The position numbers and the translations under genes are program-made. A DNA stretch of 64,000 bases from Octopus sinensis (lineage: Eukaryota). Below the pieces are notes generated by a model. It saw nothing but the letters and a program-made list of their open reading frames with translations. It had not been told where the DNA came from and made no database searches. The stretch is from contig NC_043002.1 in NCBI RefSeq assembly GCF_006345805.1, positions 22,940,001 to 23,004,000 on the forward strand, given 5' to 3'. Positions 1-61,822 of the stretch are shown here, in pieces; within the stretch, counting starts at the first letter, position 1, and each line of letters opens with the position of its first letter.

Positions 1-111
1 ACGCATGCGCCACAGACGTAGAACATCGTCGTTAGCGGAATCCAACACAGTCCACTTATTCTCTGTGAATTCGTGAGAGTAAAGTCGCACTGACATGATC
101 AGGTGTAGTCT
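1..111 (-). CDS. BCR/ABR-like exon 16 (end of C2 domain; truncated by window edge)
   Basis: Acceptor ttttactctcgccctatcttgcAG (AG at 113-112), phase 0, open to position 1. [37 protein letters not shown]; [12 protein letters not shown] resembles BCR VKLSVKFNSREF. Confidence 0.7.

Positions 112-61822: not shown

Follow-up and report, generated by a model that had tools for sequence, protein, structure and literature searches.

A strongly diverged BCR/ABR paralogue of Octopus sinensis with the catalytic residues of both its DH and RhoGAP domains replaced

A stretch of 64,000 nucleotides of the Octopus sinensis genome (RefSeq assembly GCF_006345805.1, contig NC_043002.1, positions 22,940,001 to 23,004,000 of the forward strand), referred to below as the window, contains the first 16 exons of a gene, here named W, whose predicted product is a strongly diverged DH-PH-C2-RhoGAP protein of the BCR/ABR type. 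W belongs to a cluster of paralogues, residues needed for catalysis are replaced in both of its enzymatic domains, and the protein is interpreted as a probable non-catalytic binder, a reading to which a probability of roughly 0.6 is attached. Positions are given in window numbering, with negative values lying beyond the left edge, except that those prefixed C6 are positions on the contig itself. The neighbouring paralogues are called P2, P3, and P4, and exons are numbered with the prefix E.

Domain architecture of W

W is encoded on the minus strand at C6:23,001,822-22,919,245, spans about 82.6 kb, and has 21 or 22 exons. The first 16 lie inside the window, from the ATG at 61822 through E14, which is cut by the left edge, and five more lie outside it at C6:22,933,795-22,919,245. 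All 16 window exons have a YAG acceptor and a donor of the GT(A/G)AG type, and at every junction open to comparison the intron phase of W is the same as in the genome's own conserved BCR/ABR orthologue. The claim of a sequence-only reading of the window that it holds 16 exons with strong splice sites was thus borne out. Exon ends were set from the exon structure of the orthologue, splice-site consensus, and comparison with P2. The exon calling was checked on P2, where it matched RefSeq XP_036359602 residue for residue, and several exons are equal in length between W and P2. When spliced, E1-E8 give an open N-terminal frame of 348 codons and E10-E19 give an open frame of 406 codons that ends in TGA. 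The earlier statement that the 16 exons give a protein was not borne out for this assembly, in which E9 is out of frame.

A BCR/ABR profile built from ten database BCR/ABR proteins had nine matches on the minus strand, in strictly rising order from DH through PH and C2 to RhoGAP. The architecture of W is the full BCR/ABR order, DH-PH-C2-RhoGAP. The spliced N-terminal half matched Pfam RhoGEF (PF00621) over positions 16-174 of 180 with E=4.9e-5, but the match, at 24 bits, falls short of the Pfam cut-off (27.6 bits); the DH domain is further supported by the colinear profile matches and by intron positions common to the orthologue. The PH domain directly follows the DH domain. Its first and last exons scored 19.9 and 10.3 bits against the profile, and a PDB search with the N-terminal half returned only the BCR PH domain (5oc7, E=0.045). 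The C2 domain, between PH and GAP, scored 27.9 bits (E=8.9e-8) against the BCR/ABR profile and matched Pfam C2_SYDE at E=0.006, below the C2_SYDE cut-off. The C-terminal half matched Pfam RhoGAP (PF00620) over positions 1-146 of 148 with 80.4 bits (E=1.6e-22), and a PDB search with it returned RhoGAP domains. The Pfam match to RhoGAP was clear; of the domains for which profile searches had been proposed from the sequence (RhoGEF, PH, and C2), RhoGEF and C2 matched below the cut-offs.

The RhoGAP domain is encoded outside the window, by the five exons that extend the gene from the 62 kb first proposed. The original description of a DH-PH-C2 gene was an artefact, because the window ends before the RhoGAP exons.

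The locus is poorly visible to routine searches. Pfam found no match for single exons or open reading frames of W, whole-genome RhoGEF and RhoGAP scans missed the locus (with no RhoGEF match in the window even at E ≤ 10), and a rough 374-residue concatenation of open reading frames had no match in a set of 5.8 billion proteins or in the PDB. Pfam matches came from the correctly spliced protein alone. The failures of the single exons and of the concatenation could be taken to mean that the likeness to BCR/ABR is due to chance, the exons being spurious reading frames in repeat-rich DNA. However, the null result of the concatenation says little, because the concatenation had incorrect exon ends and did not include the better-conserved GAP half; once corrected, the C-terminal half matches Argonauta at E=1e-136. 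Chance likeness is extremely improbable in view of the colinear profile matches, the conserved intron phases, the 80-bit RhoGAP match, and the orthologues in three other species, which are 53-100% identical.

Catalytic residues of the RhoGAP domain

The enzymatic activity established for BCR/ABR is that of the RhoGAP domain, and the larger departure of W from BCR/ABR lies in the GAP domain, not in the DH domain. The pair Arg282 and Lys319 (p50RhoGAP numbering) is described as defining RhoGAP catalysis, and without the arginine finger GAP-like proteins are inactive (PMC8305018). In the arginine-finger exon of W (GLDSSFIYVMRGDD, compared with GLDEVGIYRVSGGL in the orthologue) the finger Arg is replaced by Val, and FIYVMRG of W is placed opposite GIYRVSG by the family alignment, as it is by those to the PDB structures of ARHGAP15 and GRAF. 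The partner lysine is also lost, LKLYFRELP having become LTRYLRSLP in W with Thr in place of Lys; this column is taken to be that of p50RhoGAP Lys319. The Asn of HNLATVFGP, in the N-L-A-x-V-F-G-P helix, is Ile in W. This last criterion is weak, because ARHGAP15, an active Rac GAP, has Ser at the same position.

Canonical BCR/ABR proteins, including the octopus orthologue, retain the finger Arg, the partner Lys, and the Asn. In a motif table for the W, P2, and P3 lineages, made up of five sequences from three species, the finger position was Val in W, Ile in O. bimaculoides W, Val in Argonauta, Ile in P2 (two species), and Leu in P3, where the canonical proteins have Arg.

Catalytic residues of the DH domain

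The sequence-only reading had quoted three peptides as evidence of a dead RhoGEF, and all three were found on the minus strand (ILANGNVDL at 59508-59534, LLHCPTIAH at 45620-45646, and the third at 40815-40844). The deviations it described in the CR1 and CR3 motifs are real at the aligned positions, Glu being replaced by Gly in CR1 and Lys by Cys in CR3. In the family alignment, CR1 is (S/T)-E-x-x-Y in canonical human and molluscan BCR/ABR proteins and Q-E-E-T-F in the octopus orthologue. In W it is N-G-N-V-D, with the Glu changed to Gly and the aromatic residue to Asp, while all of the orthologues keep the Glu. At CR3 the canonical K-P is present in all of them, including the octopus orthologue; W has C-P, P2 has F-P, and the Argonauta W orthologue has Y-P. 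P2 retains a CR1 of T-E-F-H-Y (ILSTEFHYAEQL, residues 10-27 of XP_036359602), which indicates that the loss of CR1 is specific to the W lineage, and the CR3 and GAP losses are common to the paralogue family. A different guess at the P2 CR1 exon, 'SILGRHNV' (B 8691), was ruled out by the same RefSeq sequence.

Of two arguments for a dead GEF, one did not hold and the other was weakened. The first was the absence of INE, which is a string of vertebrate BCR; molluscan orthologues have NLEE or ILET at this place and the octopus orthologue has NLND. The missing INE diagnoses nothing, because the molluscan orthologues are without it too. The second was the use of BCR as a yardstick for an active GEF. 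A crystal-structure study measured no exchange by the DH-PH of human BCR on RhoA, Rac1, or Cdc42 and classed it as a pseudo-GEF (PMC5727386). The octopus orthologue has lost neither the CR1 Glu nor the CR3 Lys, nor any of the GAP residues. It has Gln at both CR3 arginines, in its exon 4 (C6:93,520,580-93,520,632; LLQKPIGQLQQN; K-P-I-G-Q), which indicates that its DH domain is atypical as well.

A dead DH domain in W is plausible from these substitutions. It does not set W apart from BCR, because the human BCR DH-PH itself is without GEF activity. The view of W as a DH-PH-C2 protein set apart from an active BCR chiefly by its dead RhoGEF retains the real CR1 and CR3 substitutions in its favor; it is refuted on architecture by the full RhoGAP domain beyond the window, and the inactivity of human BCR in vitro and the molluscan orthologues without INE count against it as well, so that it is highly improbable.

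A different objection is that W may still be an enzyme, either as a GAP that uses a basic residue two positions after the finger (+2) or as a GEF acting on an atypical GTPase. The +2 residue is Arg in W (IYVMRG) and in O. bimaculoides (IYIMRG) and Lys in P2 (LYISKG), and could be a substitute for the finger; the GAP fold score is high (80 bits), and P2 retains the T-E-x-x-Y of CR1. Against this, the basic residue at +2 is not conserved, with Gln in the W orthologue of Argonauta and Pro in P3; the GAP domain has lost not only the finger but the partner Lys and the Asn too; and none of W, P2, and Argonauta has the CR3 Lys. Retained activity of either kind is judged quite unlikely, and W is treated here as a probable non-catalytic protein.

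The paralogue cluster and its relation to BCR/ABR

The sequence-only reading had called W a fast-evolving, probably lineage-specific BCR/ABR paralogue and had proposed a search for a separate, conserved ABR orthologue, and each of these points was supported. A conserved BCR/ABR orthologue was found with the profile and a BCR guide at C6:93.51-93.56 Mb, on the same chromosome and 70 Mb from W, with about 20 exons that score up to 92 bits. Exons similar to W occurred only at C6:22.71-23.0 Mb, where at least four paralogues are arranged as two tail-to-tail pairs within about 300 kb. In addition to W, these are:

C6:~22,854,000-22,912,900, plus strand: P2, tail to tail with W; XP_036359602, 743 residues
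C6:22,791,8xx (C2 exon) and 22,771-22,775 kb (GAP exons), minus strand: P3
C6:22,714,9xx (C2 exon), plus strand: P4

P3 was recognized from its C2 and GAP exons and an O. bimaculoides protein, and P4 from its C2 exon only. The tail-to-tail layout of W and P2 is the same in O. bimaculoides, where the P2 orthologue converges on the locus of the W orthologue. When open reading frames of W and P2 were compared with each other, SINE-like and microsatellite repeats dominated and only the better-conserved exons were recovered.

W and P2 are 35% identical to each other. With any canonical BCR/ABR protein, either one shares about 22-25% identity (W about 25%), compared with 36-39% for the octopus orthologue. 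In a maximum-likelihood tree, W from O. sinensis, O. bimaculoides, and Argonauta formed one clade with P2 and P3 (support 100/100), and the octopus orthologue fell in the other clade (100/100), with the canonical proteins of molluscs and vertebrates. W is a BCR/ABR paralogue, not the orthologue of the species. The point of origin of the paralogue clade is not fixed by the tree, because of the long branches, while the split among W, P2, and P3 predates the divergence of Octopus and Argonauta. The paralogue family has so far been seen only in octopods.

Selection on W and the frame break in exon 9

Estimates of the ratio of nonsynonymous to synonymous substitution (dN/dS), another check proposed from the sequence, bore on both the constraint on W and its rate of evolution. 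Synonymous sites are saturated between W and P2 (pS 0.78, pN 0.43), so that codon-position identities were used for this pair in place of dN/dS. Nucleotide identity was 0.51/0.62/0.36 by codon position, and the pattern was gone in shifted frames, which indicates long-term coding constraint. Over 215 codons compared with Argonauta, dN was 0.23 and dS 0.88, for a dN/dS of 0.27. Over 372 codons compared with O. bimaculoides, dN was 0.065, dS 0.093, and intron divergence (K) 0.094, for a dN/dS of 0.71. This within-Octopus value is not significantly below 1 (rough estimate, z of about 1.3), which indicates that recent constraint on the amino-acid sequence is weak.

Insertions and deletions gave a different measure of constraint. 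There were none between W and O. bimaculoides in 11 exons (about 1,150 nt), compared with about 13 events in a single 1.9-kb intron; at the intron rate about 8 would be expected in the exons, and the Poisson chance of zero is about 4e-4. The comparison with O. vulgaris was closer, with 11 of 12 exons 100% identical and one substitution (in E10) in about 1,050 nt, while flanking introns were 1.4% diverged. The absence of exon indels, taken with dN/dS, indicates that the reading frame has been maintained while the amino-acid sequence evolves fast. The constraint on W is weak but real.

The frame is broken at one place in this assembly. E9 is 105 nt long, and when it is entered in phase 1 from E8 it reads DEMTTHQF and then a stop (TAG). 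Over 150 nt the O. vulgaris locus differs only in having two extra bases (GAGAATG compared with GAG-ATG, and ACGCCATC compared with ACG-CATC), which restore the coding frame, and Argonauta has an intact coding counterpart of E9. Both gaps are in two-base homopolymers, 10 nt apart. The deletions reflect an assembly error or else a lesion of recent origin, and the former is favored.

If the deletions are real, W could be a young pseudogene in O. sinensis, its broken frame and the near-neutral dN/dS within Octopus both being signs of decay. The length of E9 (105 instead of 107 nt) with its in-frame TAG agrees with this, as does a dN/dS of 0.71 with dS (0.093) close to intron K (0.094). Every exon but E9 is intact, however, the copies in O. 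vulgaris, O. bimaculoides, and Argonauta are open, and two homopolymer gaps 10 nt apart are a pattern typical of long-read assembly error. The near-complete exon identity with O. vulgaris beside 1.4% intron divergence and the lack of exon indels relative to O. bimaculoides also speak against decay, and a pseudogene is considered unlikely.

Several points weigh against the interpretation of W as a retained, non-catalytic binder. The loss of catalysis is a prediction from sequence, and the model of W in O. sinensis is one from genome sequence. No homologue of E1 was seen, and its putative start codon rests on the open frame and the donor. E10c, an exon found in relatives, was not located in the W locus. 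To these are added the RhoGEF match below the cut-off, the basic residue at +2 from the finger, the frame break in E9, and the weak amino-acid constraint within Octopus.

Possible function and relation to known systems

Under the interpretation of W as a non-catalytic binder, the protein would neither exchange nucleotide nor stimulate GTP hydrolysis, and would be a membrane-associated binder of Rho-family GTPases or of partners, held at the membrane through its PH and C2 domains. The BCR PH domain binds phosphoinositides at its first hairpin (PMC5727386), and the PH domain of W keeps a basic K-N-K-R-K-L-R stretch in this hairpin. Conservation within the protein is highest in the C2 core. Docking of Rho-family GTPases may have outlasted catalysis in the GAP fold. 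OCRL1 binds Rac-GTP without stimulating hydrolysis (PMC8305018), and by analogy W might act as an effector-like or sequestering scaffold. A scaffold or decoy role would fit the loss of the GAP catalytic residues and is offered as speculation.

More tentatively, and with somewhat less than even confidence, octopods may have evolved a tandem BCR/ABR-derived family in which GEF and GAP are both dead, and may have kept it for longer than the divergence of Octopus and Argonauta, as pure Rho-GTPase or membrane adaptors and a lineage-specific rewiring of Rho signaling in cephalopods. If so, W would be a natural two-enzyme Rho regulator that turned wholly into a pseudoenzyme and was then duplicated and retained, which would bear on the origin and the non-catalytic work of pseudo-GEFs and pseudo-GAPs. 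It would also be one more small gene-family expansion among the innovations specific to cephalopods. The conserved octopus BCR/ABR orthologue could be an in-genome positive control for assays.

W is a variant within the known BCR/ABR family and not a new kind of system. It has the same domain order, its intron phases match those of the orthologue in the same genome, the sole PDB match of its PH region is the BCR PH domain, and its DH domain, like that of human BCR, is probably not a working GEF (PMC5727386). It differs in being about 25% identical to BCR/ABR, in its separate clade and tandem multi-copy family, in the replacement of the GAP finger Arg, partner Lys, and Asn and of the CR1 Glu and CR3 Lys, and in lacking the N-terminal coiled-coil and kinase regions of BCR.

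Two groups of known pseudoenzymes are comparable. The Dbl-family pseudo-GEFs (the BCR DH domain and six further Dbl members in which key catalytic residues are said to be missing) have in common with W a DH fold in which the CR1 Glu and CR3 Lys are not conserved, but the divergence of W is more extreme, with Pfam below the cut-off and a putatively dead GAP domain in the same chain. The pseudoGAPs without an arginine finger (OCRL1, INPP5B, ARHGAP36, DEP1/2, FAM13B, and p85 alpha/beta) have in common with W a RhoGAP fold with the catalytic Arg replaced, but they are unrelated to it outside of this fold. To our knowledge, none of these pseudoGAPs joins a dead GAP to DH-PH-C2, and none is a lineage-specific tandem cluster.

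Exon structure of W

The exons of W, with the evidence for each, are as follows. Phases are given as acceptor/donor.

61616..61822, minus strand: E1, putative first coding exon; ATG at 61822-61820, 69 codons, donor GAC/gtaagt
59484..59657, minus strand: E2, start of DH with CR1; phases 0/0; profile positions 70-125, splice sites, and CR1 alignment to BCR/ABR
58719..58898, minus strand: E3, DH helices (ELKNWSEHS); phases 0/0, as in the orthologue; profile positions 140-192; matches orthologue exon 2 at E=0.019
54493..54600, minus strand: E4, DH, 36 codons; length and phases as in orthologue exon 3
49851..49881, minus strand: E4b, 31 nt; phases 0/1; a 31-nt P2 counterpart in XP_036359602; 100% identical in O. 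vulgaris
45596..45648, minus strand: E5, CR3 exon; phases 1/0; acceptor position and phase shared with the orthologue and P2; Argonauta counterpart ELLKYPIITQYRILYGLK
40767..40871, minus strand: E6, end of DH (...PPDIH); phases 0/0; splice sites; 52% identical to the orthologue exon and 60% to Argonauta
36317..36435, minus strand: E7, start of PH; phases 0/2; BCR/ABR profile 19.9 bits; 74% identical in Argonauta; only PDB match is the BCR PH domain 5oc7
34816..34883, minus strand: E8, PH exon, 68 nt; phases 2/1; same length in P2; present in O. vulgaris CAI9724812 and in XP_036359602
21141..21245, minus strand: E9, PH insert exon, 105 nt; two 1-bp deletions compared with O. vulgaris (107 nt)
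18752..18893, minus strand: E10, end of PH; phases 0/1; profile 10.3 bits; 41% identical to P2 and 60% to Argonauta
16353..16399, minus strand: E10b, 47-nt linker exon; phases 1/0; in the O. bimaculoides models, skipped by the O. vulgaris model
13500..13574, minus strand: E11, start of C2; phases 1/1
7021..7232, minus strand: E12, C2 core; phases 1/0; profile 27.9 bits, E=8.9e-8; 100% identity with the O. vulgaris protein, 90% with O. bimaculoides
4657..4722, minus strand: E13, C2 exon; phases 0/0
1..111 and on to -37, minus strand: E14, C2-to-GAP linker; 37 nt beyond the left edge
C6:22933795-22933734 (-6205..-6266), minus strand: E15, beyond the window
C6:22929548-22929471 (-10452..-10529), minus strand: E16, arginine-finger exon, beyond the window
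C6:22927461-22927327 (-12539..-12673), minus strand: E17, beyond the window
C6:22925891-22925786 (-14109..-14214), minus strand: E18, beyond the window
C6:22919440-22919245 (-20560..-20755), minus strand: E19, with the stop codon, beyond the window

E4 was the sole good candidate with phases 0/0 (acceptor score 14, donor score 7), and its P2 counterpart is confirmed by RefSeq XP_036359602. Three assignments were revised. The acceptor of E5 was moved from 45685 (phase 0) to 45648 (phase 1), as both the orthologue and P2 show a phase-1 acceptor; E10b, first placed tentatively at 17299-17222, was moved to 16399-16353 on comparison with the O. bimaculoides protein; and a candidate DH exon at 57484-57377, which is without splice sites, was dropped. 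For exon 7 of the orthologue the acceptor used gives an internal stop, which has no bearing on W.

Annotation of the family in other octopods

W had been described as hidden. This was correct to the extent that its single exons have no Pfam match, but partial models of its orthologues are present in O. bimaculoides, O. vulgaris, and Argonauta. The C2 exon matches O. vulgaris CAI9724812 (100% identity, 270 residues, annotated as hypothetical) and O. bimaculoides XP_014790547/8 (90%, annotated as breakpoint cluster region protein), and also matches the P2 and P3 orthologues. The C-terminal half matches Argonauta hians GAB1598374 (53%), which is annotated as 'active breakpoint cluster region-related protein-like, partial'. 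The annotation of the O. bimaculoides locus (L024:1-2240, plus strand, and 41734-42760, minus strand) splits it between two genes, one for a 342-residue product that matches RhoGEF and, just downstream, one for the 362-residue RhoGAP model. These two models probably belong to one gene; the upstream product is near in length to the 348 residues of W E1-E8.

Altogether, the database models (O. bimaculoides XP_014790547/8 and XP_014782258, O. sinensis XP_036359602, O. vulgaris CAI9724812, and Argonauta GAB1598374) are 35-100% identical to W. Such models already carry the automatic name 'breakpoint cluster region protein(-like)', but those of W orthologues are partial or are split into RhoGEF and RhoGAP halves. 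A full-text search on octopus and breakpoint cluster region yielded no paper describing these models, and the state of their catalytic residues seems to have gone unremarked. The O. bimaculoides, O. vulgaris, and Argonauta orthologues that are split or truncated in the annotations could be merged into one DH-PH-C2-RhoGAP gene.

Repeats and neighboring elements

Several features of the introns and of the neighboring DNA were seen in passing. An open frame of 375 codons at 37860-38984 (minus strand), in intron 6 between E6 and E7, matches Pfam zf-RVT, a zinc-binding region found in reverse transcriptases (E=7.8e-8), and is a retroelement remnant in the same orientation as W. A GC-rich block at about 22177-24181 (minus strand), in intron 8 between E8 and E9, has a GC content of 0.46, compared with about 0.36 elsewhere, and long open frames. 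It recurs downstream of P2 at C6:22,902,900-22,905,900 (plus strand) with 60-88% amino-acid identity. No Pfam match was found for its open reading frames, and it is probably an uncharacterised transposon. A SINE-like repeat has many copies throughout the window (for example 31860-32092, 35463-36064, and 56089-56817, minus strand). Together with (TA/CA/TCT)n microsatellites it fills the W introns, and these repeats dominate translated comparisons of the paralogues.

The C2 exon of P3 (C6:22,791,769-22,791,954, minus strand) lies inside an open frame of 395 codons, which is unusually long for this intron-rich family; part of this frame is the translation of a microsatellite. In Argonauta hians a 316-residue 7tm_1 gene (a rhodopsin-type G-protein-coupled receptor; L022:34252-35202, minus strand) lies 6 kb downstream of the W orthologue. 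Octopus has P2 in the place of this gene, and the layout of the cluster may differ in Argonauta.

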